Shown piece by piece: positions 1,688-52,292 of a DNA stretch of 64,000 bases. The notes beneath the pieces are model-generated. The model did no database searches and was not told the DNA's origin. It was given only the letters and a program-made list of their open reading frames with translations. Made by a program: the position numbers and the translations under genes. Numbering within the stretch: the stretch's first letter is position 1; the number at the start of each line of letters is the position of its first letter. The stretch is from Podarcis liolepis. Its lineage: Eukaryota. The stretch lies in the NCBI GenBank assembly GCA_965112155.1, contig OZ218103.1; one strand, 5' to 3'.

Positions 1688-1709
1688 CTGAGTGTCTAAT
1701 TAAGGAGAA
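1688..1709 (-). promoter_or_regulatory. U12-type branch point and 3' splice site
   Basis: TTCTCCTTAAT (consensus TTCCTTRAY), branch A at about -13, then CAG. Confidence 0.9.
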
Positions 1710-2860
1710 TTGCTTAAAAGAGTTTTTTAAAATCCAAACCAGCTGCAAAGGTAAATTACAGTGATATGATGCATAAGTAAATTTGAGATTAATACTCCAA
1801 TAGATCTGACCTTAATATTTATTAACAGGTTTACAAGTGTCATAATTGGGTATCACTTTTGTTCAAACCAAGTAATATGTTGCTAAAATTGTAACGTATG
1901 CTCCCATTTAGATTACCTCATGCACACTCATGTGACTTGGCTACTCTGAAGCAGATGCTCAACTCCTGAAAGGGAATGTTACGTACAGCTTGATTATGTA
2001 TCACCTTTACATAACCTACTGAACCAAACACCCTGTCCCTCCAGCAAACACCAATGATTGTCCATGATTTTGTATGCACTTCCATTTTGTGCACACATAC
2101 ATTATATTATTAGCTTTTTGTCCATTCTGAAACTTAAATCTATTTGTGTCTTGTACAAATGCAGTTATCAGTAATTACCTGATGCAATTTCCAGTAGTGG
2201 GAAATTCCAGAAGTATAACATTTCAGGGTTTCCAGGCATCTTATGTAAAGATGCCAACTTCTAAATGAAGCATTTGTTATTACCCGCCTACTCACATTAG
2301 GGATATCAAAACAAATGAATTTAAGATGCAGAGTTCACACTCTGTGGGGGGAAATATCTCTGCTCATTATTTTTTCTTCAAATGGAGAAGATGACTAATG
2401 TGAAATCATGTAAAGTCTTAGCTCTGTGGCTGAAAGCTGGAAGTATTATACAGAGAAACTAATCCAAGAGGTTTGTAAATGAGCTACAGTCTAATTGTAG
2501 AAATGACCCTGAAGCCTATGCAGGATTATTATTCAACTGGGGCAAAGGGAGACAAAGTAGTAGAAATACCTTTATATATATATATATATTCAGAATCAAC
2601 TTTTATTAGCAAGAATGTGCCAGGTTTCACCTTGAATCAAGCTATTTCTCATAAGGAGGATAAACCCGAGTCTGGATTGTACCACTTCTGACTGTAGGTG
2701 GGGGAATCACATCATGGAAATCTGTAAGAACAAGACTTCACACTCTTGGAAATAACTGAGCTTTCATTTAAAACAAGGACACTAGTCACTTCAAGTAATG
2801 TTTGATGTCAGCTCAGAACCAACCACTGTTTGTCATGAGGGACCTAACCCAAGATCTAGG

Positions 2861-2944
2861 CAGGAGTAGAGAACCTGTGGCCCTCCAGATGTTGCAAGGC
2901 TATAGTTCCATCATCCTTGAACATGCTTGCTGGGGCTGATGGGA
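2861..2944. mobile_element. hAT-like MITE fragment
   Basis: aacctgtggccctccagatgttg...catcatcc...gctggggctgatggga, shared with the other copies. Confidence 0.55.
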
Positions 2945-5565
2945 AAGTTTTTTAAAAAGAAAGAAAACATTCATGATATCATTCAGAAGGTATTACTATT
3001 ATTATTACTCTGCTTCTTAATGTAGCACAAGTCTCAGTGACCAAAACCTTTTCTAAAGTCCTGCAGATACACTGTGCAGCACCTGTTTCATTTATTCTTT
3101 CTCCGGATTTCAGCTTAACTACATTTGATGTAGGTGCATATGAGAGGTCAATTGTTTCATCTATCATTGGCTCCAGGTGTTTAGTACTTCATAGATCTCC
3201 TGCAGAAAGCTGCATTGGTAGTCTGAAAAAGCTTGATCTTGGGATGTTTCTCAGTCACTCTTTGCAGACAATTGCATCTCTCACATGCAAAGGAGATAAA
3301 GGCTTTGCACCTTTACTATTGTAATGATTCTCTTATCTCAACTTCAGATGCGCCCCAGTGTCTCTGTCCTCTAATCAGTTGAGCTGGTAACAAATGAAAT
3401 AAGGGTGCTGAAAAAGGGCTGGTTCTTAAAATCCACTGTACAGGGACTCTTTGTCCACTATAATTGCAGCAATGTCTTCAACTGGTTCCTTTTTCTTTCT
3501 TTTGCTTGACTTTTATTTTTAGTTTTTCCTCTTACGCTATCCTGCATTTGCAATCTATAAAATTATGCCACAGGAGAGAGAGATAGAAAAAAAACCTTAC
3601 TTGACCCAATGCAGTGCTTACTTCAATGGAATTAACAATGGCTGCTTCCCTGGATTTCAATTTTCCAAATGTGTTCCCCAGAACATTGGTTCCTGCTGTC
3701 ATTACCATCCTCGTGATGGCTATTGGATTAGTATTCCTTCCTCTTTTCTGGCCCAAATGACATGGTGAAAGACCTGCTCTTGGAAAAACAAAAGTGGCAG
3801 CAGTTTCTCCTCTGCTAGTGGCTACATTTCAATACTTTTGGAAGGAATATAAGAAACCTTAGCCCCCTAGGAAAGGATATCATTTGAAGTTAATGGTGGG
3901 TGAAATTTCCTGTAACGCTATCAATTACCCATTTTTACCCATCCCAACTGGTCAGATAAAGGCACGTAAAACCTTGCTCTTTATTTAAATCCAAGTAAAA
4001 CACCATATTTCTGATTAGTTTCAGTTTCTTATTATGCAGTATCCTTTCCACTTCTATAGTCCTCTTTGCTGTCATATTGAAACACTTTGGGGAGTCATCC
4101 ATTGCCAGTTTTCACTCAAGAAGATTTGTTGCTCCTGTTTAGTGTCAGTCTGCTCACAACCATTCCCTGTAATCGCAGCTTCAAGAACTGCACACAGAGC
4201 CTTCTTCCAGCAATAAAAACCTCAATTTGGAAACCTGTTAGCGCTATGAGTCTTTAGGGGAGGTACTAAGCACTGTAGCTTTAATAGCTCACTGATCATT
4301 TAATAATGTTGCCACTGCAGAGACCAGTCGCACTATGATCCATCCTTGCGCTTGTTTTACTTCTTAAAATGTGGGGTCATTTTGCTTTCAAGAGTGTGGG
4401 TTGACTTCCCACCCCCACCCCCCGTTTTGCAAAGCAGTGGCAATTATTGGAATTAATAAGACTCCTTTCAAAGCCACAATCTCATTTTAATAAGATCTGT
4501 TGTGTCATTTCTATGCCACAGTGAGTGAGGCTTCTGCCGCGATAAGGATTTGACAAGGGCAAAGCCAGTTAGCAGCGCCGTTCAATATTTGATAAGTCCT
4601 TTGGGGGTCTCCATCAAACGGATTGGATCTTAACTTTTATGTCTCTTCTAGAGGACAGCACCTCCATCAGCCTGAAATGCTATTGGCTGGGTTATTAGTT
4701 ATGGAACTCATCCAAGTCTATCCCCCTAAGAGGATTAAGAACTATGACCTTCTAGACTGGAGGTATCATTTGACAGACCTGTGTGCTTCTTTGTTTTATG
4801 CAAGCAGTTAAATTATGAAAAAAGAGGAGGAAGAGGGAGGGAGATGCACACAGAGGAAAAAGCCAACAACAAGATACAGCTCTGCTGAGTATGCCAACTT
4901 TGCTAGAAAGTCAGTTTTCCATTACAGAAATTGCGGCATTTATCAAGCAGAGAATTTCCTCTCTTTCATGTAACTATGGCCTAGGAATATATTTTTGTCG
5001 GTTTCATTAAGAAATAGGTCCTTAGGTGTGTGGGTACTGATGTTCAAGACTATGGAAGCTTTTCCTGAGTTGAAACTCTGTCTTGTACATCTCTTTCATC
5101 ACAGTTACACTAAATGAGCATTATAAATCATCCTCTCCTCTCACACACCCCATCTAGCAAACCAAACAATTCTCCCCACTATCTGGCTGAATATTTTTTC
5201 AGCTTCAAAATGCAATCCCCCCCCCTTTAATGGTCACCTACACTTGGGAATGCATGTAGAAAATCAGAATATCAAAGAGAATGGTCCAAGCTAGTCAACT
5301 TCCTAATGTGCTAGTTTTCTATGTACATGGATTTTAAAAAACAGGATAATAGAAAGACCAGCATTCAGTTACCATAAGTCTGTTGTAGAGGGTTGCAGGT
5401 TGGACACTCCATATGAGATTTTGAGCTGAGTTGCATGCTTAAAAGAATCATGAGAATGTATATATAAATACCTCCCAACATACTTGCATGTAGAAAAGCT
5501 GCATGTTGTGAATGAGCTTAGCCTTCTCTCTGTAGTGCTAATTTTCTCTTTGCAAATAGTTGTTT

Positions 5566-5900
5566 TTAGGGATGGGGGACAAAATTGGTTGAGTTCACAT
5601 TTGAAGGTGGACCTGCCTACCGTAATTTGCTCTGCCTGAAGCAAAAAGTGAACCGGAGGACAGCTATCCTTTGAAATTTGCACTTCTCTGAATTTTGCAA
5701 TGCAGCTCTCCAGACAATGTGTACAAAAAATGCATCTATTTGAGTAAAGTGTGCATCAAAATGCATAGATTTGTGAAAACAACATCAATGCATTACATAA
5801 ATGCTACTGAATTTTCACAATGACCCTTTAAAGAAAGGAAATTTGCAACTGATACGGACAATGACAGAAGCGTCCGGATATAGCTTGTTTATTTTCAATA
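5566..5900. mobile_element. Probable non-autonomous hAT-like DNA element remnant
   Basis: tagggatggggg terminus and an internal gaaatttgcacttctctgaattttgcaatgc segment resembling squamate repeats as recalled; boundaries approximate. Confidence 0.35.
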
Positions 5901-6023
5901 GTGGACTGTGTTCAAACATGTGGTCCTGCACCTGTAGTCTGCAGTGGTGCAATCCAAGAAAGACTGTACTTTATTCTTCTTCTCAGCATATACATTAGCA
6001 AGCAGAGAAACTCAGCGACATCA

Positions 6024-6168
6024 AGTGCTTTCTCTCTTTTTTAGAAAAAAGGTGCCAGTATGCACCATGAAGTTGTTATAGGAAGAGACACACTTTTAAC
6101 ATGGGTGGGGGGGGGGTATGAAGGTGCCAGTACTGTGTACCTTTGAGGACCCCCCAGAAAAAGCACTG
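6024..6168. mobile_element. MITE (hAT/Tip100-like)
   Basis: TIR-like agtgcttt...aaaagcactg; related to 45246-45380 in the opposite orientation (tagaaaaa-aggtgccag). Confidence 0.5.
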
Positions 6169-6531
6169 CCAGCATCAATAGCTCTATATCTATGTGAAAG
6201 GAGATACAATTCACTGCCCAGTGATTTAATACAGATTCTTTCTAAAAGAATATAAGCTGTTCCCACAACGTATTTTAAAGCGTTATAAATTGTACTTCAA
6301 AAATTATGTTCTTTCAAGATGATGGCACAGACTGCTTTCCAATCAGAAATGAATCCCTTTAAAGCACATTCCTATACATACTGTACCTGTTTAGAAGACC
6401 GTCTCATTGAATTTAATAGGATTTACTCTCAGATGAGTGTGTCCACTAAGCGACTAAAATTAGCTACCACGGCCTGGTCAATGGTAATCTGGTCCAACAT
6501 GTGCAGTGGAAATCATGGAAATGGCACACTT

Positions 6532-6766
6532 AGGCTTGTATCCAGTGAGGCGTTAAGTAAGCCTCCTGTCAGCGCAAGGATTTCCACTTGCACCATGGGA
6601 CCCCCCCCATTCTGTCTCCTCTCCCCTTCCATCCCCTAAATCTGTTATGGGGTTTTCTCCAATGCTCCAGAACAGATATAGAGAGAATGCAGGTCACATG
6701 CGCATTAGGAGCCCTAATGCGCATGTGGAAATCCTTGCACTGACAGGATGAGGGACTTGGATATTG
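6532..6766. mobile_element. Palindromic MITE remnant
   Basis: Inverted arms cctgtcagcgcaaggatttccac (~6565) and gtggaaatccttgcactgacagg (~6725). Confidence 0.55.
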
Positions 6767-9319
6767 AACTCATATTGCACATGCCAGTTTGGGTGTGGCC
6801 TCATGCAACCAGACTCTGAACAGAGAAGAAACAAATACCAACAATCCATGCAAACCAAGGGAAATGTTCAAATGTCTTGCCTGGTACAATGCATCACAAA
6901 GAAACGAGAGGAATTACCTTAGTAAATGCTACTTGGCACACCAAATTGAAATGGATCAGATTTACTGGAAAAGAATAAGGAAATCTGATGTCCAAGGACC
7001 TGGGCTGAATTAAGTAGAAAGGTTTTTAGTCTTCTCGTTGGATGTTGCATATTGCTGTCATGCAATCAGAACAAGGGAAGGGCTCCCATAACTTATCCCG
7101 TTTGACCCCCTGCCAAATCAGGATTCCCAGCCTTATACTGTACAATACCTGATTAACAGCCATCCATTCTCTTCTTAGAGACCTTTTGGGAAGGCTGTTC
7201 TGCAACTTCCCTGAGGTATTTGCTCTACAGCCCACCTGTTCTTATGTCTAAAGCATTTTCTTCACCCCTAATGTTAAGAGCAGATGAAGTGGCATGGAAG
7301 CCAATTTGCTTGCACAGAACCAGCAGGCTCCATCATGATAGAGCTCCCCTGGGGGAAAGGTTGACAGCCTCTGATGCTGTACCTTTAAAAAAAGACTTGC
7401 AGTCCCTAAGTAATAGTCATGCTCCAGTGTGTTTAGTATTTTGGCTGAGCTCAGTGCAAACCACAGTGATTTAAAGCTTGGAGATCAAGTAGGATACAGC
7501 AGATTCAGAATTATTTATTTCTTTACTGCAGAAAGCCTCGCTACGGATTATTTACTGCATGTGGGGCTATTTAGGATGGGGGGTGTTGTAGATTGATTGA
7601 AATTTTTCAATTAAAACAAGCAGTCTTTTAAAAAGATTTAAGGTTTTATCAGTGAGAAGAAAATAACTCAAAGAGGCAGAAGCTCTGGTAATTCTCTGGC
7701 TGCAAATAGGGGCCAAAGGGAAGGGGGACTAAGGAAACTTTATTTTTCAAGGGAAGGTCAAAATTAAAATGGGGGAGAACCTACCAGCATTACTGTTCTC
7801 TCCTTCACAACATTCATGTTATCTCTCCTCCTTGGTTATCTATGATGTCTGCTAATATTTAATGGGAGCAAGGAATTGTTCTGGGGATTAATTACAATCA
7901 GAGAGCTGTTTCAGTCCACAGCACCATACATTGCATCTGAATGAGATCTAGTGATATTATTCATATAGCATCAATGTATGTGAGGAGGGGGATGAAAACA
8001 AGGTTTGCAGAGGTCAGGATTTTTCAGCCTAATTTAAGGTGCTGCATCTTTTATCTGAGGGAGTTCAGCGTTTTTTAGGAACATTAGTTGCATTCAGGCA
8101 TCTCAGTAATAGTGCCAGTTTAGATTTTTTAAAAACAACAACAACTGATATTGCATCTTAATCACTTACATAAATGTAGTGCTTCTGTATGCAATGGATA
8201 GCTGGAATTCAGCTGAAAGTTCTACTCAACACAGTTCCAGTGAATTAGGAAGCAAATGGGAATTTGGCAAAACCTATTTTATAGCCCCGAACAAATTTTT
8301 TAGGTGCTTATCAGGACTGCAGTAGGTTAAAACATTACTCTAGACACCTTTAAAGGTGAAGAGGGGACTAGACAGCAGTATTCATGAGATTCAAACTAGA
8401 ACGGGCAAAGGGCAAATGGAGAAATTACACGGGGTGATCTGCAAGGTTAGTCAGAGTAGAGTTATTGGGGAAAGAGGAGACGAGCAAAATGAGGAAGAGG
8501 CAATAATGGAAAAGTCAGAGGATTAAACCAAGGGGGTTTAGTCCTCTGAGGGTCTGAAGGCCACATTTTCTTGTGGGCAAGTTTATGGGACCTGAATGCC
8601 AATGGTGGGTGTAGCCAAAAGCAAAAGTAGGGGCCTGAAGGGGCACATTTGGCCTCTGGGACTGAAGCTTCCTGGCCATGAAAACTACCCTGCGCATCCC
8701 TGGGAAATTCGCCCCCCCCCCAGGTTTTTACTTTGCCCACCCCTGGAAAAATTCCTGAAGATACCCATGCACCTCATAGATCATACAGGTATTGGTATAT
8801 AAGTCTGCAGCATGATTTAGTTTTGATTAAGATCCATCTGCAAATGTTAAAGCACTGTAACCATCCCTACCAGTGGGTTCTGTGGGTTTTTGTCCTCAGG
8901 TGTGTTAGTCCCCCCCCCTTAAATGCACTGCGTTGCTAAGAAGAGAGAAAGAACCTGCTGAGGGATGCTTGCCTCATGAGTTATCGTAGATTAGAATTTC
9001 ATAGGATAAAATCCTGGTACAACAGCCCTGTTTTTTCTAAAAAGCTTTTATGTACGTAATCCATAATTTATTATAAAAATGGGGTATTAGAAGGGGCTGT
9101 AGGAAAATAATTGACTGGAGGAGGAGAAGTAACACTGTCAGCTCCAATCCCTCAAGGCCCATAGATTTCCCCAGCCTCAGCTTCCATTCCCTGCTTAGAT
9201 CCTGGGCACCTGCCAAGTAAGCAATCTGAAGAGCTACATATTGACCAAGCATAATTGCAGTTCTGATTGTGCCCAATAACAAGGAAAGATGGAGCATGGG
9301 GTTGAGAGGCAGACTATAA

Positions 9320-9323
<4 letters not shown>

Positions 9324-9360
<37 letters not shown>
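9324..9360. repeat. (GA)n microsatellite
   Basis: Directly visible. Confidence 0.98.
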
Positions 9361-9364
<4 letters not shown>

Positions 9365-9525
9365 ATACCCCCACACCACTTTTCATTTGTAGGAAAATAC
9401 CGAAATGGTTTCCAGTGTATTAAAACTATACAAAATCCTATTAAAATAAACGAGTTAAATAAAACAGTATCGAACAAAAACAAAAAAATAATCAGCACAG
9501 TAATCCGGTGTGAGGTATCAGTACT

Positions 9526-10042
9526 TGTTGTTGTAGTCGTTTAGTCGTGTCCGACTCTTTGTGACCCCATGGACCAGAGCACGCCAGGCACTCCTGTCTT
9601 CTACTGCCTCCCGCAGTTTGGTCAAATTCATGCTGGTAGCTTCAAGAACACTGTCCAACCATCTCGTCCTCTGTCGTCCCCTTCTCCTTGTGCCCTCCAT
9701 CTTTCCCAACATCAGGGTCTTTTCCAGGGAGTCTTCTCTTCTCATGAGGTGGCCAAAGTATTGGAGCCTCAGCTTCAGGATCTGTCCTTCCAGTGAGCAC
9801 TCCCGGCTGATTTCCTTAAGAATGGAGAGGTTTGATCTTCTTGCAGTCCATGGGACTCTCCGGAGTCTCCTCCAGCACCATAATTCAAAAGCATCAATTC
9901 TTCAGCGATCAGCCTTCTTTATGGTCCAGCTCACACTTCCATACATCACCACTGGGAAAACCATAGCTTTTACTATACGCACCTTTGTTGGCAAGGTGAT
10001 GTCTCTACTTTTTCAGTACTAACTGAAAACTGATGTCTCTAC
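9526..10042 (-). mobile_element. BovB (RTE clade) LINE 3' fragment
   Basis: C-terminal peptide MRREDSLEKTLMLGKMEGTRRRGRQRTRWLD...VHGVTKSRTRLND, (CAA)n tail, TSD tatcagtact at 9516-9525 and 10043-10052. Confidence 0.95.
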
Positions 10043-11479
10043 TATCAGTACTGTCAGCAAATGCAGGCTAAAGTACATTGCAGATCAGCTGCGTTCAGTT
10101 TGGTAGATCACAAGTTGTGCAAGTTGTCATGCCCTCACTCAGAATAAGCTAAACAAACCAATGCTCTGATTCAGACCCGCCCCTTATATTCCCACACCTG
10201 TCGTAACCTAAGCAGTTGTTAAATCCTCTCTCCCCCACCCCAAGTAGTTATAATTTCCTGGCCAGTAATATTTTTATAGTTCATTCTCTCCAGGAATCCT
10301 CTTGCTCCTCTCAAATTGTGTCAAGTCTCCCGAAGAACTCCTGGGCCACCATCAGCCTTAAGGAAGATGTGACTATGGACAGAGTTCAGATACAGTCAAG
10401 AGCAAATGATCAAAACAGTGTTGTCATATCCACCGGCAAGGATATTTTGAGGTCTAGGCCTAGACTGAATGAGTGAAGAAGGAAAGGAGTGCTGGAGCAA
10501 ATACATGGGCCAGAAAACATTGCCAAAATAGTGTGTTTCCTAGACCCTACTACTGGAAATCATGTCTGGACAAAAACAATTCTGAAGATGCATGGCAGGA
10601 AAGTGATTTTATGCATAATTTGCAATGGTAGATGGAAAAAACAAAACAAAACACCAGCACCACTTGCTCTGTTTTGGGGGGTAAGCTTACATTCCCAGCC
10701 CAAGATGTATAAACAAGATAGCCACTGAATCCCACTGATGAGAATTTAGTGCAAGTCCTTAATTAAAGAAGAACTAGAAGAAGAGTGCATGTCAGTTGAA
10801 CACACTCAGGAGAATGCAGGAGCTTGGTGAAATTGAACAGGGGGGAAGCAAAAAATAGAAAGTAAATGGAAATTGTTCAAAGGTAATTGAATGTATGTCT
10901 GAGCATTTATGTGTGCTAGCTAGCAATAAATACACTTTGCGGCAAAGCAAGCCAGTATGGGCAAATAAAGAAAGTGCAGAAAGCAATCAAGGGGAAGGAA
11001 GAAGCATAAGCAAGCTGAACTAAAGTACTGCTTTGAGCTGGAATGGGAGAGGAATAAAAGCCAGAGTGAGAGAGTCAGTTTGCACTCCTGCAGCTGATGC
11101 AGAATTATAGACATGGCAAGTAGGACAAAACCCACACAATTGTCTTAAAAATATAAATATACTGCCCACCACCTGTACAGATACCAGAGTGAGGTGCAGT
11201 GCATAAAATAAATAAACCATATGATATGATAGATGCGGTAGAAAGTCTAGCAAGATATCAGGCAGACGTTCCAGGTCACTAAGTTGCTCAGTGTCAGGAA
11301 ACGGAGCTTTTGCTGGGCCACGACTATAGGGAGATTTAATGGGAATTCTGGGTTGACTTTTCTAAGGTGTGTGTGTGTATGGGGTGTGCTGCTGACAGGT
11401 GAGCATCTTTCATTGCTCTATGTACAAGGAGTTAATACAGAGAGTATAATCCCTGCAGGACAAACAGCACCATTTAGAA

Positions 11480-11614
11480 CAGCCTTTTTCAACCATGGGT
11501 CCCCAGCTATTGTTGGAATACAACTCCCATCATCCTTAGCTAGTAGGACCAGTGTTCCAGGGTGATGGGAGTTGCAGTCCAACAACATATAGGGAACCAA
11601 GGTTGAAAGAGGCT
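11480..11614. mobile_element. ~130-bp hAT-like MITE
   Basis: Foldback structure: agcctttttcaacc...ggttgaaagaggct, with internal caactcccatca/tgatgggagttg arms. Confidence 0.7.
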
Positions 11615-14600: not shown

Positions 14601-14869
14601 CCTAACATTCACCCGCATATGTGGTTTCATATGCAGTTGCTAATGTGTGCAGTGTTCATCCACTAGCCCTCCTAGGCTAGATCAGTTTAAAACAGGTGAG
14701 AAGGCACTCATTCTTCACGTGGTGGATGTACAGGAAGTCAGTCTGGTTCTTTCCAGCTATTGTTGGACATCAGCCCCAGGCAGCATGGTCAGTGGTCAAG
14801 GATGCTGGGGCTGAAGGCAAACAATATCAGAGGGCACTGCATTGGCTACACGTGGATGAATACTGGGTT

Positions 14870-15045
14870 AGAAGATTTGGATTTAGGAGCCCTATGGTCA
14901 AAACCCCACGTGGACCATGAAGATCACTGGCTTGCTTTGAGCCAAACACTGTTTTTTAGCCTAGGGTTGTTGTAATGAAGACAAAGTGAGATAACTCCTT
15001 CCATGTACACTGTTCTGAACTCCTTGGACAAGGGATGAGATATAA
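14870..15045 (+). mobile_element. Old CORE/MIR-Squam3-like SINE remnant
   Basis: Decayed similarity to the SINE at 58234-58491 (...gagccaaacactg...agggttgttgt...). Confidence 0.4.
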
Positions 15046-15309
15046 TTGCAAGGGGCATATTTTATATTAGAAGTATATCCAAATTGTGAAAGTGTCTCTT
15101 GATTACCTAGATGGAGAATGCAAAGATATTTGTGTATGTGTGTGTAGAAACCTCTGTTTTTTATATGGCTGGTCTTTTCCACATCTGTTTATTCACCCAC
15201 CTTTGCCTCTGACTACACTCACTGGCTGCATCTAGCTGTGCTTGTCACTGGTGTGTAGCCAAGAGAAAACGTGGACTTTGGGATGAAAACGTTTCCTTCC
15301 CTGCCTGAT

Positions 15310-16140: not shown

Positions 16141-17006
16141 ACAGAGCAAATGAGAATACAGTTGTGCGTAGAAGAGCTTTTGCGTTGCAGTTCAGCCATT
16201 ATATGAACAATGTGGAATTATTAATTGAGGACAGCGGAGCTGGGTGTTTAGTAATGCATCATCTAATGGACAGTATATGTGCCTGTTCTGTAGCAAGCAT
16301 CCTTCTTTTATGCTTTCAAAAAAATAAAAATGTAGCAGTAGCCCGAGGGAAAGAGGGGAGGGAAGAGAAACAATTTACCTTAATGACATGGTTTGCTTAA
16401 GAATTAAGTGTTGATGAAAGTTGAAAGCTAAAGCTTACTTTTTAATTCACAGACCAGCTGCAACACAGCATGAGGAGAGAGTGGGGGGTTGGCCGTTTCA
16501 TTTGCTAAAACACCTTTCTCCTGGTACGATGATGACTATACTCTTCAGTAATTCAATTTAATTGAAATGCCACGCTTGTTAAATCTAAGTCCTATATTGA
16601 TCAACATATGTCAACTGTGGAAAATTGCACTAAATTGTGTTACATTTCCTGGGATGAGTCAACTGTCCACTGGTGTCTGAAGCAAGCTTAGGCTACCGAG
16701 GTAAGATTGGACCAGGACTGATATTGCATCTAGAATTGGATTTTCTTATCAAGTCCTTTCTTTTCTTTTTAAAGAACAAATGAAAGAAAAGAGACATACC
16801 CAGAAAAACTGCAGGATCTCATAAGCGTTGGTAATCAGGCTATGCCAGCCCAGCACTCTTTAAGAGCAAATATTGCAGCAGCTAAACGTAGTGATGGCAA
16901 TGGGAAGATTAATATCAGACTGTACTTAAGCAGCAGAGTAGTTGTAACTACTTAGACCTGAGGTCTAAGGGCTGTAGGGCCAGTTCACATGTGATTCATT
17001 TCCTAC

Positions 17007-39700: not shown

Positions 39701-42436
39701 GTGAACTAATGCAATATACAACGATGTTGTTGGGAATCACGCTTCCCAACTATACAAGGTGGAGAGACATTTGGTATGGTATACTCTGTTTCCCTAAAAC
39801 AGACTCTAATAGGAACCTGGCTGCAATGCAAAAGCTGAGGACAAAAACACCTGCCTGAGTTGAGTCACCATCCAGTTTTCCCTCAACATGCTGGCTGGGA
39901 AGCAACAGCAGTTTTTTTTTATTTATTTTGATGTGACAAGAGCTAGGCTGGCTTTGGAGTTGATTAACATCATCTGTTGCTGCCTATGCACTTGTCCCTG
40001 CACCCTCATATGTACAGGTGGTGGTTCATGATACACATTTATAAACAAATGGGTTGTTGTTGTTTTCTTTAAAAATACCCTATAACCCTTGTACCTCCTA
40101 TGGCAGAAACACCCCCCCCCCGTAAAGATTGTTCCTGAACTTCCCACTATAATGAGATGATGACACTGAAAGAAAGATTGCATCAGGTTTGCAGAACAAC
40201 TTTGTAGTATGAAGTTATCTTTTAAGAATGCCCTTCGATACAACAAAAACCTAAATGTAAACCAAGCTTTGCCTCCTATAACAACAACAAAGTAAATGTC
40301 CAGATCAACTGATCCCTAACTTGACTCACAAACTTCAGCTACAATCAATGGCAGTGTGAAACGTTCCATAAATATTGTGAGAATGCGAAAACACCTGCAA
40401 CAGCAAGCAATTAACTCCTTCCTTTTATTAAAGCCTCATTTAAATCCAGCTACATACTTCTACAGTGACTGCTAACCTTGAATTCACATTGGCAAGTGTG
40501 TCCGCAACTGGCTTTCTGTGTGGATCACTTTTGAGAACGTTTAAGACAAATGCCTGCCTGTTCTTCAGTCACCTCTTTTCTAACCAATAAGCCGTGAAGC
40601 TACTGAAATCATTGGCAAAATTACTCTTGATGTTAACGGGGGATGGTTTGGCATAGCACACTGCAGTAAGGGGATGAATTGAGGCTGATGCACATACTAG
40701 GCTGATCCTGGCATGGTCTGACAGGCTAGTGCTCCAATTTATGCCTGATGAGGATATAACCCAAAGAGAAGAATGGAGCAGAGACAAATGTCTTTCATCT
40801 ATTTACAGCAGCATCTGTAACCCTAAATATGATTATTTACTGTCTTCTGTATGTAAGAAAAGGATGAATCTCAACCTATTATAGCTACAATGTGGATAAT
40901 TTCTTTCCCCCAGCTATTACAGAAATGCTTGAATCACCATGATGATAACTACTGGCCACCATCGCTGCCTGCCAAGTGAAACTGAAGCTATAAAGATTTT
41001 AAAAGCAGGGGCAGTGGCTTGACTTTATTTCACAGCAACAAAGAAAACATCCAAATATTTCTCCTGTAAGGACATTTGGAGGAAGGAGGAAAATCTCATT
41101 TGTGCCACAAGAGGGCACTTTAACTACAGACAAATGCAATCTATGCTGTTTAGGAATCACCCAGGAAAGAAGGTGATGGAGGAAGAGGAAAACTGCTTAG
41201 TTATCTCCTGGGTTATAGGATGATTGCATTTGACTGCAGAGATACAGAAAGATGCACCAAGCCAGTAGTTTGCAACAGAATTCCCTATTTGCCTGCTGCT
41301 GCTGCTGCTGTTGTTGTTTTCTTTTTCTTTTTTTAAAGTCATATGGGCTGGCCCATATATACTGCAAAAGGGGCAAACTTAAGGAAAAACGAAGATTGTA
41401 TTGACCAGATGCAGGACACATGGCATTGCTTTTCAAATGAAAAGCCACAAGAACGCCAAAGCCCATGGGTCCAAATCAGTCTCTTAGATCGGACACGCAT
41501 GACCCACCAACCCAAGTGCAGATCACCAGCCATGCAGGACAGGACTGTTCATCGGGGCTTGAGAAACCTATGGGGATCATTTCTTTTGCACTTTGCCTGG
41601 AACTGCCAAACAGAAGGCAGAGATTGCTATGCATATATATGGGAGGCCACAATACAGGGATGGGAAGCTAAATCTGGCTCGGTGGTCACAAGTTGGGCTG
41701 GCCTGTCACTATAGGTGCTCCTTAACCCCCCATACTATTTCTGATGCCCTTTCTAGGTATCTTTCTCTTTACTTGCACTCTGTGTGGAGAGGGAAACCTT
41801 TAGGGCACCTTTGCAGATATATCCACAAACTTTACTAGCAGAACACATTTTTATATGGTGAAATCATGCCCATTTGAGGCTTGAAAGCCAACCCCTCCCA
41901 AATAAACTCCCCATTTGCAGCCCCTTACCTGCACAACTACCTGATTTCACAGAGCTCCATGTGAACATGAGTCTTTCTGTGTGCACTGGAGCTGCAGAAA
42001 TCTTGTGACTGGTATCTGCCTCACACACGACGGCGATTAAGGTTTTGGAATAACTCAGAAGGTTGCTTTAAGTTTGTCTGGTGTAAGTGTTTAAAGTTAG
42101 CAGGCACATAAGTAAGCCAGGCACGGACAAACTGGGGATGAAGGTGTGTTTCTCAGACAGAGCTGGCAGCTGCCTTCGTTTATCGGCAGGCCATTTATCA
42201 TCTCAAGAAAAATATTGACGGTTCACAAGATTCACACTTGCCCTGGCCCTGGGCTGAAGAAATGCTGTCTTCCAGGAAGGCTTTGAAAATGGAACCAAAT
42301 CAAGGAACTGTGCCTCAAAAAGAAAGGGAGGGCATTGTATTAAGCAAGCAGAGGAAAGCGGGAAGACTCCTTGTGTGAAAAGCTGGCTACAAAAGGATAA
42401 CACTGGTGCCAGCCACTGGGAATACATTTCTAGTAG

Positions 42437-43527
42437 ATTCCATCTTTCTACCCCAACAAAAGTAGGCCTAAAAAGACTGATGTGGGCATTTTCAGGATAT
42501 TGCCAGAGAGAACAGCTGGCTGTGAATTACAAGAAAACCCAAGTCATGGTTTTCTCAAGAAACTATAGAGCCCATAGATGGAGCATGGACAACCAGCTCA
42601 TTGAACAGGTCAAAGTTTTCAAATATCTCAGCCTTATTTTCCAGTCTACAGGGTCATGGGGAGCACAACAGAAGTGTGCAAAAGAAAAAGCTTCCCAGAG
42701 TATCAAAATTCTGACACGCTTTTTCTACAGAAAAGGTGGTAAACATACACTATCAGCCCTAGAAGTGTTCCAAGCTAAACCCCTGGCACAGTTATTATAT
42801 GGGGCTCAGATCTGGACAGGCACTCAGCTTGGATCTATGGAAGCTGTCCAATCAAAGTTCTTAAGGCAAATTTTCTCTGTACCACCTCATTGCACCTAAT
42901 CTTCCCTTGGCAGAATTACGGGTATGGCATAGGACACTTAACTATTGGCTTCGCCTAAACTGAAATCCCCCTGGTCTAATATCCCTAGTGCTGCAAGATC
43001 GTCACAAGAGCACCTGGACTAAAATTGTCTATCAAAAACTTCACTCTTGTGGTTTATCACCACAACAGCTACTCACACTGGATTTTAGTAAAGCAAACAG
43101 TCTAATTAGTCAGTGCCTAAATGATATTAAGCGAGAGGACAACTTGGCCATAATAAGGAAATTTTGTCCATGGTACGACTATTTCCCACCTACCCATTTC
43201 AACTTGGTGGCGCATGCCCTTCTGGCTTGCACTCTTTATAAAGACTTGAGGAATGAGGTTATCATCCCTCTTTTATTGTCCATTCCGGGTCACCCAGCCA
43301 CTGTCACAGTGTCCTTTCTTTTGGCAGATCAAAATGAGCAGGTGACAGCAAAGATTGCAGGTTTTTAGCTGGGGCAATTAGAATAAGATCCTCTATTTGA
43401 CTATTGATTCAAAACCCAAAAATGTATTTTATATAATTGACTTTTTATCTTTATTCTTTGTATATTGTATTGTTGTTTTATTGCTATGGTCGGTGGCTGA
43501 TGCAAATAAAGATTCATCCATTCATTT
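42437..43527 (+). mobile_element. 5'-truncated non-LTR retrotransposon, RTE-X-like
   Basis: RT C-terminal motifs GLKRLM..F..YC...LAVNYKKTQVMVF, EQVKVFKYL and LLYGAQIW; HALLACTLYKDLR zinc-knuckle remnant; aataaa followed by an (attc)-type tail; TSD at(t/c)tctagtag at 42426-42436 and 43528-43538. Confidence 0.8.
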
Positions 43528-44403
43528 ATCTCTAGTAGCTGCATACTGCAGAAGTTGTTTCGGACAATAGCTGAACCATTATGTCTTTGCTCCTGTAAAT
43601 GTAGATATGTGGACAACGCACACCTGTGCCACAACTAAACTAATGTCATTCCAGGATGGCGGGCTCGGAAATAAGCTGTATGTCTCAGAAAAGGATTTTA
43701 GCACACTGTTTGTCTAGCCTTCCTTAAACCAATAACTTAAGGGCAAGGGCCAAGAATGGAGCATTATGAGTGCTGTGTTCCTGGTTTGTGTGGCCACTGT
43801 CAGTGGCAAGGAGTTTTGAGCAGGGCTCCTGCTAAGGTGACACATCAAGCTGGGTTTAAGGTCTCACCCTTGGCATAAGAGGGCAAGTGGGTGAGGATGC
43901 ATTTGGGTTCCCTAGCACTTTCCTGTGCCCTTCCCTATTGCCTCTGGATGGTGCCGGCTTACCCATGATGAGGGGTGGAAAGCGAGAACTAGCCATGCCC
44001 AGCTGAGAAGGACTAAGTCACTTTGAATGGAGAAACATATATGCTAGTTATAGGTAGTAGTTAGTAGTTAAATTTGTGGGGAAGTGTATCCACAACTGTT
44101 TCTTTGCTGACTTCCTTAAGTATGGCAGAGTGGATTGTATGTGAAGGAGAAGAAAAGCAAGAACTGTAGTTAGTCTAGGATTTGTTATTCTGCTGAAAGG
44201 CAAGGATTTCTAAGGAGCCTGAGAGATCTAGTTGTATCTCCATGGGGATTTAGACACCTTACTGCTGCTTGTTCTCTGGGTCAACTTCTAAATCTCATGT
44301 CCAGGGGATTAAGGTGCAAGTCAGAAAAATATACAATCACAATGATACCATGAGTTCTGGTTGGTGACAAGTATGAGATGGAGCAATGATAGACATATCC
44401 TGC

Positions 44404-44411
44404 ACTACTAC

Positions 44412-44443
<32 letters not shown>

Positions 44444-44474
44444 CTTCTTCTTCTTCTTCTTCTTCTTCTTCTTC
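44404..44474. repeat. (CTA)n(CTT)n compound microsatellite
   Basis: Directly visible; explains the poly-Phe ORF. Confidence 0.98.
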
Positions 44475-45245
44475 AGCATCTCACATTCATCTTTGGATAT
44501 ACCCCTCTCCAGTGTTCTCGGTTGTTTGCTTCCTGCACCCACATAAGGCTTACTGTTAATCTTAAATCATGCTCTCATCACATAGGTGGCTGTCTCCTTA
44601 GTCTTTTAAAATGGTAGGGTCCCACACAAGCATATTCCATTGGCCTGAGTCATCTCTTGCCACATATCCCGCACATGCCCATTTTAACTCTGCAGACATA
44701 TGCAGGACACCTGGCAAGCGATGGAATAAAGTAACGCTAGTGTGGAGATCTCTTACATGTGAAGAAATGATCAACCCCGGAAGATAGTTCCACTTAAATT
44801 ATTGGTAAAGCGAGCTGAGAAATAGCACAGAATTTGTTAATATAAAAGCAGCAGCAACACAAATGAATATGGATAGCTGACACCGCAGTTGCAATGCAGA
44901 ATGGGGTCATCTAAAGTAACAGTGTTAAAAAACAACAACACCTCTTGGAAAAATAGCTCATTTCTAAGTCCATTCCAAATTTTAAGCTTCAACATGGTCC
45001 TGCAGACATCAACAGGAATGAGACTGCTTGTAAGACAACACACGCACAGCCTCTTTCCTGTTCCCAAAACATATTTGGCAGCAGCACTACCACCACACGG
45101 AGAACTCTTGAGAAAGGCTGGTACTGTTCTCCTAATTATGCCTGAGGATGCTGCCACAACAATGTCCCAGGTACAAGGACCAGGGAATTCTAAACAACGG
45201 GCATTCATTTCCATACACACACCCAAATCCAAGACCTGTCACTGC

Positions 45246-45380
45246 CAGGGCTTTTTTTAAAGCCAGAACTCACTGGAACTCAGTTTCAGCACCTCTCAGG
45301 TGGGTACCATTGCCATTGTAAGAGAACAAGGGAGGTGTTCGTGGTGAGTTCTGGCACCTCTTTTTCTAGAAAAAATAGCT
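45246..45380. mobile_element. MITE (hAT/Tip100-like)
   Basis: cagggctttttt...aaaaaatagc termini, internal gccagaactcac/gtgagttctggc inverted pair. Confidence 0.6.
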
Positions 45381-46069
45381 TTTGAGTAGTAGTGGTGGTG
45401 GTGACCTGTGCTATCTTAGAAACTGCTTAAATAAGATTTGAAGAGTGGGTGTTCATTGTTTATGAGGAGGGCTAGATTTTACTCCTTCGGACAAATCATG
45501 CCATTTTGTACATGGCAGCCAAAGTAAAAAAACAAACTACATTTAACACAGAAACAAAGATGCCTGTAATAAAGGTCCTGCTCTTAGGGCTGTTCAGCAA
45601 CAGGAAAGTATGCCAGGTTTGCGGAATTCACTGGAACTTTGTTTGCTATACTAAAGGTGGATTCAATTTGTTTCTTAGCTTCTCCAGACACTTTTTAAAA
45701 ATGTAGGGCAGGGAGAGAAAAAATCCGTACCTAGCAGGATGCTGTGCATTGTCATTAATTAAAGTCTCTAGAGAGTACAAAGGCAAAAGCAAAAATGAGA
45801 GTATTATTGCTAAATTAAATCAATATTGCCAGCATTCTCTTGTGACATAAATACAAAATAGGCATGCAGGCTTCCCATGGTCTCTGGAATTTGAATGGCA
45901 TAAATAATATGCTGCCTTCCTAGAGCAGATTACCAAGCATTCAAAAAGGTGAGATGTCGTAGTCTATGAGAGATTTTATTTCTGTAGGGGATGCCATAGG
46001 GTCAGTAGTTTTGACCAATCAGTGGTCACTTCGGCAGCTGCTGGTTGCCATTATTACTACTACTACAGG

Positions 46070-46305
46070 GAATCAGACAGGGGGCCTTCTTGGTAGTGAC
46101 ACCCACCCTGCGAAATGCCCTCTCATCCAATATTAAGGAGATGAGTAATTATGTAACATTTAGGAAACATCTGAAGGCAATCCTGTATAGGGAAGTGTTT
46201 AAGGTTTAAGGATTTATTATGTTTTTATATATGCTGGAAGCTGGGTCAACCCAGTCAGCAGGGCAAGGTGAAAATTCTTATAATTAATAATTATTAATTA
46301 TTATA
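46070..46305 (+). mobile_element. L2-like LINE 3' end
   Basis: gggccttcttggtagtgacacccaccctg.gaaatgccct...tttaggaaacatctgaagg resembles the L2 RAFSVxAPxLWNxLP...FxxxLK C-terminus; (taa)-rich tail. Confidence 0.7.
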
Positions 46306-46749
46306 TTCCACTCAGCTTTGCGCCAATATGGTGGCATCTAATGTTGTTCTTGTTTTGTTCATGCTCCAAGCTGCCAGGTCCCAGAATTTATCTTCCCTTT
46401 GCTCAGACACCGCCAGCCCTAGTTCTTGCCACTGTCATCTCACAACATTCGCTATTTTACAAAATTCGCTATTTTATTCTTAAGGATTTTCTTATATGTT
46501 ACTCTAATCCTACTTATATCCCCCTTATTAATTACAGAGGGTACCCCCCTCAAAAAAAAATCCTAATAACTCTTAGAAGATCTTTCTTTGCCTCCTTGCA
46601 TTGCCCATCAAAACAATTTCTCTGGCTTCCCTGTATACCGTTTGTGGCATTGGGATATATGAGATAGGGTCTGATGACTGTATTACACACACACACACAC
46701 AAACACAAACACATATTGTGCCTTGGTCAGACCACACCAGGAGTACTGT

Positions 46750-46887
46750 GTGGACTCTCCTTTCTTGGAAGTTTTTAAGTAGAGGTTGGATGGTAATCTA
46801 TCATGTATGATTTAGTTGCAATTCCTATATTGCCAGGGGTTGGACCAGCTGATCCTCAGGGTCCCTTCCAACTCTACAATTCTATGA
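46750..46887 (+). mobile_element. CR1 LINE 3' end
   Basis: ttggaagtttttaagtagaggttggatgg...ggggttggac...ggtcccttccaactctacaattctatga. Confidence 0.85.
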
Positions 46888-47545
46888 AACGTAGAAGCTC
46901 CGCTGCTATTGTAAAGAGCCCCATTGAATCTCTGGCTAGAAAAGGAATTTCCCAGAGACACTCCTGCAAGAAGTCTAGAAGCACAATACAGCACAGTGAA
47001 CTTGTAAGCTTATTGCAGGCAAACAGGAACTTATATGGAGTGAGGAAGTATGTGTGCAATAATTGAAAATAGCTTTTGTTTTAGTGTGGCGATAAAGCAG
47101 CATTTCACAGATGGTACAGAGGACCAGGATCTTACTAATGGCTTGCTAGGCTGATACTATTATAAACTTGGCAAATGGTGCATGTGGAAGCTAGTAGTGT
47201 ACTGTAGCATTTGCTTTGGCTGCAATTAATTGATAACTTAGATTCCTGCTGACACTTACTTTTTTCCAGAAGAGAACTGGCAGAAGATATGCAACTAGCA
47301 TTTCATTTTCTCATTATAAAGGAGCATACTTTTTTTTTTTAAAAAAAAAAAAATCTACCTCTTGATACCAAGCACATTGGAATGTGAAGAAAAAGAACTT
47401 GGGAGGAGGCAGGGGCCAGGGAGCTGAGTTCTGAGTTAAAACAAATGTCGCTAATGGAGAAGGCAAGGGAAAAGGGTATGGCAGTGCATGGTGGAACAGC
47501 AGAAACCTGTCTTCACATATTGCTGAAAAGGAGGATGTGCATCAC

Positions 47546-47660
47546 CACATCCAGTGCTAGTCTAACTCAGAGTAGACTCACTGAAGGGAACAGGCTTGAC
47601 TAACTTAGGCTCATTAATTTCAGTGAGTCATCTCTGAGTGGTCTTAGTTGAATACTACTC
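47546..47660. mobile_element. ~120-bp palindromic MITE
   Basis: actcagagtagactcactgaa / ttcagtgagtcatctctgagt inverted arms. Confidence 0.6.
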
Positions 47661-47854
47661 TTAGACTGGACACATCTTCAAACAGAGGGCTGTCTTCCGA
47701 TAGCCTTTCAAACAGAAGACTGTAAAATCAGGAACATGGTCACCTTCTGCCTTGCTCTGCATAATCTGTAAGTGGCACATGTGTGTATACAGGGCTGTAC
47801 CCAGCAGTGTTAGAATAGAACCACTAAAATCACTGAAATGAACTTAAACTAGTT

Positions 47855-48051
47855 ACAGGTAGGTAGGCGTGTTGGTCTGCTGTAGTCGAAACAAAATAAA
47901 AAAATTCCTTCCAGTAGCACCTTAGAGACCAACTAAGTTTGTTATTGGTACGAGCTTTCGCGTGCATGCACACTTCTTCAGATACCTACGCATGCACACG
48001 AAAGCTCATACCAATAACTAACTTAGTTGGTCTCTAAGGTGCTACTGGAAG
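47855..48051. mobile_element. Penelope-like element remnant (inverted pLTR foldback)
   Basis: 65-bp inverted repeat with 3 mismatches (47905-47969 / 47990-48054), same family as the 26.3-kb copy, 15-bp TSD gaacttaaactagtt (47840-47854 and 48052-48066). Confidence 0.85.
47948..47985 (-). ncRNA. Minimal type I hammerhead ribozyme motif
   Basis: GUAU-CUGAAGA-A-GUGUG(CAUG)CACGC-GAAA-GC-UC-GUAC: conserved core, stem II, 4-bp stem I and a palindromic AGCU in place of stem III. Confidence 0.7.
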
Positions 48052-48480
48052 GAACTTAAACTAGTTGCTTTCATTTATTTCAGTGGGTTTGCTCTGAGCA
48101 TGACTTAGTTGGATTCAACCCATAAAGTCCAGCCCAATAATATGCAATAATTATCCCATACAATTGGGTAGGAAAGATCAGGGATGTGTGGATGTTAGGT
48201 CAATTTTGTGGAGGCAAGGCCAACCAAGGAGGAAGCAAATGTATGAGGTCCAACATGTTTAGCACATTCATTGTGCCATACGCACATATAAGATTCGACA
48301 TCAAGGTGGGATGTGAAGTTAAAAATGCATTCAGTTTGAAGACTAGCAACATGGCAGCTCTAGAGAAGACATTCTCAGAACTTCTATTCAGGTAATAGAA
48401 ATAAATCTTATTTTAAATTTAGCAATATGCACCATACATGCATTTGTTTGTACCTATATTATCCTTTAATCTGAGCAGTC

Positions 48481-48483
<3 letters not shown>

Positions 48484-48519
<36 letters not shown>
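48484..48519. repeat. (CA)n microsatellite
   Basis: Directly visible. Confidence 0.98.
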
Positions 48520-48521
<2 letters not shown>

Positions 48522-49835
48522 TGTATTAATACCTTCTGTTTAGAAGCCATACTCACAAACATGAAACATGGCAGAACATCTCAAAAAACCCCAGTGATAC
48601 ACAGATTTTTGTAATTAATCTATGCCCCAGGGGTCATTCAAAGTGTTCATTGCCCCGTCTTATTTGTACTTCAGACAGATGCAAACACACAGGTACCAAG
48701 TCAGTTGCCAAGCTAAATCTCCAATCTGACATGGTTGTTATCAACTTTACTCTCTTCAGGTAATTTTTGTAGACTGTTCATAGTTTTTAAGCCCTTCATT
48801 GCCTCCACTGCCTTTCAGCTTAGTATTGCCCTTTCTGTTGCACCTAAGTTTTGCAAGTATAACTAATAGGAATTTAACATTTACCAAAGAATTATTTCAA
48901 CTATAGGTTTAATAGCATTTTTATGGTTCTCTGAACAGCCAAGAGTTTAGCTATCAGTTCCATCTGCTTCGCTTCCTTCCAATTTGCTTATATGTAAGAG
49001 AAAGGAATAAGGACAAGCTTAAAGAAGGAAAAGAAATTGTGGTGCTCCCATTTAAATATGTTTCCCATTTAAACACTTTTCTCCTTGTAATTTTTTTGTT
49101 TCTCTGTACAAGCACCATAAATCATAACCATTGTCCATTTCTGTTTAAATAACCAAACTAAGAAGTTGAAAGCAGTGAACTGGGGGGGGGGGGCGCACAC
49201 AGAGTTGGTTTATTCTGTGCTCTTATTGAAATGTAAAGCATAGGAGACATTTTCAGCTCCTGTTTTGCATGCAGATTCCTCTCCTCCTCCTCCCCCCCCC
49301 AACCCCCCAACCTGGGCTGAACTTCCACCCTGACACTAGTGAAACCCCATTGAAATTTATGAGCACATCACATGGGTGGCACAAGGGTTATACATGCATC
49401 AGAGGTGAGGCATTTTTGCAACGTTTCCAGCAGCACCAAAAGCTACCCTTTTAGCACTTTGAGAGGACAACATAAAAGGGAGTGTAAAAATGCTTGCCCA
49501 TACAGAGCGAGGGCAATGAATGATACAACTGGTTGGAATTCTTCACGTGCCTAATGCAGCAAGCTCTGTTAGTTGGCTTTGTTTCCTTTAAGTGATGTCA
49601 TCACACAATCAAATCTGATTGGCTACATTGCACCTGGATGTCATCCCACTTGCTACATGACTTTTGACTGATAGATCTCTCTTAAGAAAGTGAAGAAAAC
49701 CCTAAACAGGAAAAAAATACGCTGAAATAGTATCAGACAGAGGAAAGCTATTTTCAGCCTCAATGGTGAAATGCAGAAATGTACACCACAGCCTTAATAA
49801 ATATTGTGGTCCTGTTTTGTAGCCCATAGTCAGTA

Positions 49836-49969
49836 CATGTGTAGTCACTGTGGTACTTTCCAGATGTTGCTGGACTACAACTCCCATCATTCCTAATAAT
49901 TGGAGATGCTGGGGCTGATGGGAATTCTAGTCCAACAACACATGGAGGGTATCACATTGGCTATCCCTG
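49836..49969. mobile_element. ~130-bp hAT-like MITE
   Basis: ccagatgttgctggactacaactcccatca / tgatgggaattctagtccaacaacacatgg arms. Confidence 0.7.
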
Positions 49970-50033
49970 TTCACTGCTACCAGAAATAGTTACTGCTTCC
50001 TCTTCCAGCATCTTCAGGAGAATACATGCTATT

Positions 50034-50165
50034 GGGTTGGATCCAGCCCAGGTTTGACCAGCTTAGGTCTTATTGAAATTAATTGGACATCCATTAGTTG
50101 TAACTAATATTTCATATTACTTTCAATCGAACCTAAGTGCTACCAACTTGTTCTGGATCCAATCC
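50034..50165. mobile_element. Palindromic MITE
   Basis: TIR ggttggatccag / ctggatccaatcc with internal cttaggt..attgaaa / tttcaat..acctaag arms. Confidence 0.65.
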
Positions 50166-52228
50166 ACAGATTTCACTGTGGGCCATATAAATAAAATTAA
50201 CATATTGTTTGAATTAACATAATCAAATTACACTTTTAAATTCTCCTCTTAAAAAGTACAATTAGCTACAGAAGGGTTCATCTCAACACAGTTCAGTAGA
50301 AAAAAATGTTTTCCCTGCAGTCATTAATGAACTCCAAGGTCATTAAAAAAAACCTCAACCATGTTATTTAATTACCAATTTGCAAACATGCCCATAAAGA
50401 GCTGCTGCAACCTAACTAGCATGGTTTCATTTTAGCTGCAAGTACGTCGGTTACCAGGACACATCTTGACATTAAAGAGGGTGATTTTCAACGCTGACGT
50501 GTTGTCTTCTTAAGCTTGATCATTTATAAATTAGAAAAACAGTGCTCCACACAATACATTAAAGAACTCTGCTTTGTCTTCTACTTAAGAAATGCAGCTA
50601 ACTAGAAATCACAATCACCGAGTCTCTCTGGTAAATTAGGATGATTTGACAAGAGTGATTTCTTAGATAAAAAGCTGGTGTTTTGAGTACAATCCCTGGC
50701 AGAGACAGGAACTCTTATCCCTATTCCCATGATAAGGCTGTCTTTTTATGCTTTCCTAACATGCCTCAATAGCTCCACAACATAATCTTCAACAAATTTC
50801 TTTATATCCAAGCTTGGGCACTCTAAAGGATCGTGGAATTTATAATGAAACAGTATTTCAATTATAATGAAATAGTATTCAATTAATCATTCTTGTGCCA
50901 ATTAATTTAGCTTCTGCAGTGATGATTTTCAAGAAGCTTGCTAGCCCTGCTTCTAACTTCCCAACCACAGTCATTCTTGGCCAGGGTCACAGAAAGTGAA
51001 ATGTAACATCAGAAGGTGGCAGGGAATGAGTGCAATGGAATTCAGGGCAAGGTAGGGCTTCTCCTCTTTGAGAGATCTAACATCCGCAAAGGAGGAAGGA
51101 GAGGAAGTTACATCCAAGCAGGGTAAGATTTTCCACATTAATACACAGGTTATGCTAACATTTTCCATGTTTGCCTGTTCAAACCAGCTTGTGCTACTTT
51201 TAGCACAGCAGGGTCAGCCATGCTTATGGAAATCAAACTGCAGTCTCAGCTTTTCTGTACCTCATCACCAAAGATAATCACTGCTATCTACAACTTATTT
51301 TCTGCTCTGGCTGGCTGATGGCAATGATGTATGAAGCAAGAGTGATATAGCTCCATCTGCATAAGACAAGTTGATCCTGCAGAGATATAAAGAGCCCCAA
51401 CCCCCCCCCCCATTCCCCAAAAAGGGAAATAAAAAGGAAGGATGACTTTTAGCAGGGAGCTGAGGAAGTGGGAGATGTAAATCATGGAGGGAATGCATAA
51501 TCAAGGACAGCACAGTCTTTTTTGAATAGTGACTGGCATTTTCTCACAGGGGCTAAAATTGCTTTTGACAGTTTAGACCAGGATTCAGAAGAGGTTGACG
51601 ACAGAACAAATTTAACACTTGCCACTGGATATAGAAGCTAATAGAAACTTCTGGCAAACCTTTGGAATATTATAGAATAGTATGAATAAACAGAAAAGGT
51701 GCACATTAATGAGGTTATACAATATACAGCCCTAAAAGAGGGGGGAGAAGACAGGTATATAGACATAGTCTTTGTTTCTACGGTTATTTTACTTGAAGAA
51801 GTTCTTGGAAGGAAAGCTTGCTATTGCCTCCTCCATCCTGCAGCCACCTGCACCCCTCATAAAACCTCAAGAGTATAGAAGGGCCCCCAGAACAACATGT
51901 GATGGGGAACAAAAGACTGATGGCGAAATGGGGGGGTTCAACCCCAGATTAGGCAGAAAGCTACCCAATTTAGCCTGGTTCTCTTCTGACCCAACAGCTC
52001 CCTCATGTCCCATCCCACATTCCCAGATACTCTGGCAAATGTGACACAAATGCTGCAGGGAGAATGAGGGGATGAGAAACATTCCGCCCATGAATTTTCT
52101 GATACTAAATTACTTCAGGATCCAAGCCATATCCTAACAGAAACTTCTGAGAAACCTTGAAAAGATGATATAACAGTGTGGTTGAGCAAAGAAGGTATTT
52201 TTTTGAGCTGCTGTTATTCCAAGTCTTT

Positions 52229-52237
52229 GCTTACCTT
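52229..52237 (-). promoter_or_regulatory. Alternative U2-type 5' splice site 58 nt inside the U12 intron
   Basis: AAG|GTAAGC, a near-consensus U2 donor (GT at 52234-52233). Usage is not demonstrated. Confidence 0.5.
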
Positions 52238-52282
52238 AGATTCCCAGGTCGTGGTAGAGCGAAAACAAAAACTAAAGCATCA

Positions 52283-52292
52283 CAAAGGATAC
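52283..52292 (-). promoter_or_regulatory. U12-type 5' splice site (U11/U6atac recognition)
   Basis: GTATCCTTTG, an exact match to the RTATCCTTT consensus at the exon boundary. Confidence 0.95.

Follow-up and report, generated by a model that had tools for sequence, protein, structure and literature searches.

A probable U12-type intron of 50.6 kb in the AGBL4 orthologue of Podarcis liolepis

A stretch of 64,000 nucleotides (nt) of contig OZ218103.1 from the reptile Podarcis liolepis (assembly GCA_965112155.1), referred to below as the window, contains two C-terminal exons only of AGBL4, the gene for cytosolic carboxypeptidase 6 (CCP6). These exons lie 50,605 nt apart, which raises the question of whether they are joined directly and by which spliceosome the intron between them is removed. 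Judged from its sequence, this is with high probability a U12-type GT-AG intron of the AGBL4 orthologue, and orthologous to the one known from mammals.

Anatomy of the intron and its U12-type motifs

All features described here lie on the minus strand (-) of the window, and a slash marks a splice junction. The upstream of the two coding exons, exon A (52293..52455), is 163 nt long and codes for SSTSFNRDAVKAGTGRRFLGG...TLEVSFYSYIVGGTTSTVPYTEET plus one base T (full translation SSTSFNRDAVKAGTGRRFLGGLLDDTSYCYTLEVSFYSYIVGGTTSTVPYTEET), so ending one nt into a Tyr codon. The intron (1688..52292, 50,605 nt, phase 1, GT-AG) opens with the bases GTATCCTTTG (52292-52283) and carries the U12-type 5' splice site GTATCCTTT (52284..52292), located exactly at the coding exon end and preceded by a T at position -1. 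Near its other end the U12-type branch-site motif TCCTTAAT was found (1699..1706), the second A of which, at 1700, is the presumed branch A. It lies 12 nt before G1688 of the 3' splice-site AG (1688..1689) and 13 nt before the first base of the downstream coding exon, exon B (1591..1687, 97 nt). The passage from intron to exon B reads ...AATTCTCCTTAATTAGACACTCAG/ATATGAAA, and with the carried-over T (T/AT = Y) the exon translates as Y-MKLGRNVARTFLDYYRLNSITERPLAPISST. An AG also occurs earlier, at 1697-1696, but at 4 nt it is too near the branch A for use. Two in-frame exons 50,605 nt apart, this donor and a branch point at -13 had been described in the initial annotation of the window, and all of these coordinates and motifs were confirmed.

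The donor GTATCCTTT agrees with the pattern /RTATCCTT at intron positions +1 to +8, and TCCTTAAT at 1706-1699 agrees with the branch pattern TCCTTRAY near the 3' end. The distance of 12 nt to the AG falls within the about 10-15 nt that usually separate a U12-type branch point from its 3' splice site. The intron can thus be written as T/GTATCCTTT ... TCCTTAAT-N10-AG. Between branch motif and AG stands TAGACACTC, in which there is no separate polypyrimidine tract; over the last 40 nt up to the AG no pyrimidine run exceeds 8 nt, and the 8-nt run is the branch site itself, against 13 nt at the acceptor of exon A. An earlier statement that the intron has no pyrimidine tract was roughly right.

The motifs alone are not rare. 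On both strands of the window GTATCCTTT occurred four times against an expected 0.65, with a single copy on the strand of the gene, and TCCTTAAY occurred six times against an expected 5.8. Inside the intron, the sense strand holds seven donor-like RTATCCTY decoys and four branch-like decoys with a U12-like distance to an AG. Beyond chance is the presence of both motifs exactly at the two coding-exon ends, in the right orientation and spacing.

The donor was also compared by eye with donors scored in MIDB, namely TGTGTATCCTTT of Tmem150c (score 95.6) and TTCTCCTTAACC (93.6). A T at -1 and a non-zero phase are biases reported for GT-AG U12 introns (Moyer et al. 2020, PMC7367187), and the -1 T and phase 1 of this intron agree with both.

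The same GT-AG intron might nevertheless be removed by the U2-type spliceosome, with the U12-like motifs being incidental: its termini are those of U2-type introns too, and the branch motif provides an 8-nt pyrimidine run 14-21 nt before the AG. The donor, however, fits this poorly, since CGT/GTATCC matches the U1-pairing consensus CAG/GTAAGT at four of nine positions and is without the -1 G and the +5 G. The evidence from other species, given below, bears on this alternative as well.

Gene identity and joining of the two exons

The peptides of exons A and B are too short for Pfam or PDB searches, which gave no match with either, and a phmmer search was therefore run with exon A alone as the query; the exons were searched singly throughout. 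This search returned 145 homologues with identities up to 100%. Exon A was 96% identical to 'Cytosolic carboxypeptidase 6' of Varanus komodoensis, and further matches were named in their sources as 'ATP/GTP binding protein like 4' (Zosterops, Stegastes), 'AGBL carboxypeptidase 4' (Callorhinchus) and 'cytosolic carboxypeptidase 6-like' (Ascaphus, Ciona). The best of the named matches belong to squamates. At full length, homologues carry the Peptidase_M14 domain (PF00246) together with the CCP N-terminal domain (PF18027). On the evidence of these named matches the gene is the AGBL4/CCP6 orthologue, of the CCP subfamily of M14, as had been proposed.

Exon A had also been called the catalytic exon, which holds in part. 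It contains TLEVSF, the Glu of which we take, from knowledge of the M14 family, to be the general base (Glu270 of carboxypeptidase A). The zinc-ligand motifs HPGE and DIHAH, on the other hand, belong to upstream exons: in an alignment with the CCP5 structures, which ends where the exon-A equivalent starts, they lie upstream of that equivalent and hence outside the window. A side observation concerns P0041, an AGBL4-like model of Monopterus albus with a BEN domain (PF10523) at residues 206-253 that overlaps the start of the M14 match; the model may be a fusion or have been joined wrongly.

Direct joining of the exons was evident from 16 homologues that pass without interruption from ...PYTEE[x] into Y[M/T/A/L/R]..G.., that is, from exon A to exon B. 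They include proteins of a lizard (P0003), a frog (P0018), the elephant shark (P0015), Ciona (P0052), the flatworm Schistosoma (P0061) and the mollusc Nucella (P0109). When eleven homologues were compared with the window by tblastn, only exons A and B matched, with consecutive query coordinates (398-454 and 456-486 for P0018); the matches over exon A covered 52294-52470, and nothing significant was found between the exons or in 52.6-64 kb. Given these matches and the contiguous homologues, no constitutive exon lies in the gap, in line with the initial annotation, which had taken the exons as directly joined. Searches for other content gave no Rfam family at gathering score in the whole 64-kb window, and no Pfam family in the open reading frames of at least 130 amino acids (six in the window, five of them in the intron).

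The two exons might still not be joined directly in this species, either because a lineage-specific exon is hidden in the 50 kb or because the locus is decaying into a pseudogene. Among the sequencing runs listed as containing the stretch, none is recorded as RNA. Four runs of a related organism, two of contigs and two of raw RNA-seq reads, were mapped to 50800-54300, a range that spans the exon A side only, the exons being too far apart for a junction readout, and they gave no transcript data for exon A. Moreover, five mammalian models (P0011, P0014, P0016, P0017 and P0028) run from the same donor into other sequence, so that alternative acceptors may exist. Yet the reading frame of each exon is open, identity to proteins of lizards and other sauropsids is 96-100%, the lizard model P0003 crosses the junction, the tblastn searches left the interval empty and the splice signals are all intact. 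A hidden exon or a pseudogene is accordingly most improbable, and direct joining of exons A and B is retained.

The only RNA matches in 50800-54300 were of about 32 nt and fell in 52789-52922. Numerous RNA contigs and reads of the related organism, unrelated to one another, match about 32 nt there and then diverge, and the region is probably a short dispersed repeat.

Donor conservation and the mammalian counterpart

Evidence on the donor in other species came from gene models that read through it. Fifty homologue fragments are unspliced at this point and continue as Cys-Ile-Leu/Phe/Pro, where the phase-1 translation of T/GT ATC CTT is C-I-L, as from T/GTATCCTT. The window's own read-through past the donor is CILCDALVFVFALPRPGNLR, followed by a stop. 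Such tails occur in proteins named CCP6 or AGBL4 from Varanus (a monitor lizard), Zosterops (a bird) and Stegastes (a teleost), and in an unnamed protein of the teleost Pampus; the annelid Ridgeia has the C-I-F form. Mammal-like fragments read EEA/CILG, which agrees with a mouse-type GCC T/GTATCCTTG. Judged by these tails, homologues of other vertebrate classes, and probably those of some invertebrates, have kept the donor motif at an unchanged codon position.

With GTAAG or GTGAG, as in ordinary U2-type donors, the translation at this position would be C-K or C-E. The C-K reading was seen in six short, distant and unnamed fragments only (P0080, P0083, P0084, P0099, P0119 and P0124). Their PYTEE[x]/C-K sequence is the expected product of T/GTAAR, a U2-type donor, at the same codon position, and they could stem from a U12-to-U2 conversion in some lineage or from a paralogue.

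The Cys-Ile-Leu/Phe/Pro tails are a recurrent annotation error at this intron, present for instance in Varanus KAF7244336.1 and in UniRef entries of Zosterops and Stegastes; public AGBL4 models acquire the spurious tails through the failure of predictors at this U12 donor. A different case is P0096, an unnamed ENA gene model with the sequence PYTEEA-CIPLHTHTHTHTHTIKLCMATHVLDFLID-LKLGKNVARTF, which looks as if a whole intron, here of only about 90 nt, had been translated at this position. Since this model seems to hold such a short version, the length of the intron across animals may vary between about 0.1 and 50 kb.

The read-through frame of the window also leads to a second donor-like site, AAG/GTAAGC (52229..52237, with the junction at 52235/52234), 58 nt inside the intron and in phase 2. 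A sizeable share of transcripts might use this U2-type donor and so bypass recognition by U11. The site is a near-perfect match to the U2 consensus, the frame is open up to it, with the stop TAA overlapping GTAA, and it is present in a close relative as well, behind P0001. Cryptic U2-type sites near minor introns are used when minor splicing is weak. Against a sizeable share speak the length of the extension, as 58 nt is not a multiple of three and joining to 1687 shifts the frame, and the acceptor at 1688, which offers no separate pyrimidine tract for U2AF. The read-through tails of more distant species also differ, so that AAG/GTAAGC is not widely conserved, and such an insertion was seen in no homologue protein. 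Appreciable use of this donor is thus unlikely, and from its sequence context it is probably a cryptic site. An in-frame U2-type bypass from 52235 to the acceptor at 1687 was considered and rejected, as the 58-nt extension breaks the frame.

The intron with the U12-type donor has a catalogued counterpart. It had been suggested initially that the position may be catalogued in mammals, and a database check indeed found both human and mouse AGBL4 in the MIDB tables (Olthof et al. 2019, PMC6717393). Human AGBL4 has one minor intron (chr1:48539739-48587003, 47,265 nt, ENST00000371839; Table S1), with the 5' splice site (5'SS) CCT/GTATCCTTA and the branch point sequence (BPS) TGCTCCTTAATG (Table S2). 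Mouse Agbl4 likewise has one (chr4:111617283-111656325, 39,043 nt; Table S1), with CCT/GTATCCTTG and TGCTTCTTAACA (Table S2). The minor-intron status of AGBL4/Agbl4 is given as 'Both', with 5'SS scores of 98.7 and 96.5 and BPS scores of 76.2 and 81.4. None of the other AGBL genes, nor AGTPBP1, is in these MIDB tables.

The sites of the window to be set beside these are CGT/GTATCCTTT and TTCTCCTTAATT. Human and Podarcis introns share the gene, the codon position and the GT-AG subtype; the donor core GTATCCTT is identical, nine branch-site bases (CTCCTTAAT) are common and the lengths are 47,265 and 50,605 nt. The last bases before the human donor, CC-T, fit an Ala codon and a split Tyr codon, as in the EEA/CIL read-throughs. 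The two differ in the preceding codon, which is Ala (GCC) in human and Thr (ACG) here, and in the base after GTATCCTT, an A in human and a T here. The mouse intron is orthologous as well, with its donor CCT/GTATCCTTG and its classification as minor, but has TTCTTAAC as branch site in place of TCCTTAAT and is about 11 kb shorter. Compared with U12-type GT-AG introns in general (IAOD/intronIC, Moyer et al. 2020), donor, branch site, branch-to-AG distance, -1 U and non-zero phase are alike. The shared donor core and nine branch bases, together with the fitting -1 T and phase, therefore identify the intron as the orthologue of the catalogued one: it is already known from human and mouse AGBL4, and this is an ordinary orthologue.

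What sets it apart from the class is length. Most of about 165 human minor introns sampled from a part of Table S1 are shorter than 5 kb and one exceeds 47 kb, a 68-kb intron of a long non-coding RNA (PMC6717393). By this partial sample the present intron stands far in the upper length tail, and the earlier remark that 50 kb is long for the class was fair. The great length of the AGBL4 minor intron is conserved.

These comparisons also bear on removal by the U2-type spliceosome, introduced above. GTATCC is retained at its codon position in the 50 fragments, over several vertebrate classes, which a U2-type donor would not require, and the orthologous human and mouse intron is curated as minor. 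Incidental U12-like motifs are therefore a very poor explanation of this intron.

Some points weigh against the U12-type assignment and are set against this agreement. The class was assigned by comparing motifs by eye. Conservation of the donor is read at the protein level, from translated read-through, and the fragments are not phylogenetically independent. Coverage of exon A was zero in the four RNA runs, which is uninformative since the method drops reads of conserved genes. With these points taken into account, the assignment as the U12-type intron of AGBL4 keeps the high probability given at the outset.

Splicing of the intron and its meaning for AGBL4

The anatomy of the intron, the adjacency of its exons and the conservation of its donor come from the present analysis; the steps of its removal are taken from what is established about minor splicing. 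The U11/U12 di-snRNP (small nuclear ribonucleoprotein) would pair with donor and branch site together, through U11 and U12 respectively. U4atac/U6atac.U5 would join next, with U6atac displacing U11 at the donor, and the AG would be picked for lying close to the branch A.

The introns on the far sides of exons A and B have ordinary U2-type sites. Exon A is preceded by a U2-type acceptor (52456..52480) with a 13-nt pyrimidine run and 90% pyrimidines in -3..-22, followed by CAG. Exon B has a putative 3' end at a U2-type donor, ATG/GTAGGC at 1591/1590, which is the better donor in 1585-1598 (-) and gives a TG/N split codon; after the aligned Thr near this end several homologues carry Arg, and the window does not reach the next exon. 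The true sites of the U12-type intron are probably chosen by exon definition, with help from the U2-type sites on the far sides of exons A and B, because sense-strand decoys resembling donors and branch sites lie inside the intron. Exon definition, which the initial annotation had put forward, is also a plausible generic expectation for any long intron.

The initial annotation had further proposed that the intron could be rate-limiting for CCP6 expression, an idea that found no support. In the study of Olthof et al. (2019, PMC6717393), retention went with significantly shorter minor introns, and alternative splicing was commoner among long ones. AGBL4 is absent from the retention and alternative-splicing tables of that study, although low expression could hide it there.

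As a discovery the intron carries little weight, since MIDB already lists the AGBL4 minor intron of both human and mouse, its motifs and size there being nearly those found here. One small practical point is an annotation pitfall: many public AGBL4 gene models and open reading frame calls end in a spurious Cys-Ile-Leu tail.

A second one concerns cilia. Among minor-intron genes, mouse Agbl4 is listed as enriched in testis and is annotated to centriole and cilium (PMC6717393). No main-text discussion of AGBL4 with a minor intron or the minor spliceosome was found in the literature searched, where papers with both 'AGBL4' and 'U12' were on unrelated topics. AGBL4/CCP6, an enzyme of centriole and cilium, is for this reason an unexamined candidate in work linking minor splicing to cilia. 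One speculative and unlikely extension is that the extreme length in mouse, human and this reptile (39-50 kb) is kept by selection. In ciliated and germ cells the output of CCP6 would then depend unusually strongly on the dosage of the minor spliceosome, and this would contribute to the ciliary defects of minor-spliceosome disorders. A weaker version asks for less: this could be an ancient bilaterian U12 intron, which turned to the U2 type in some lineages, as in the C-K read-throughs.

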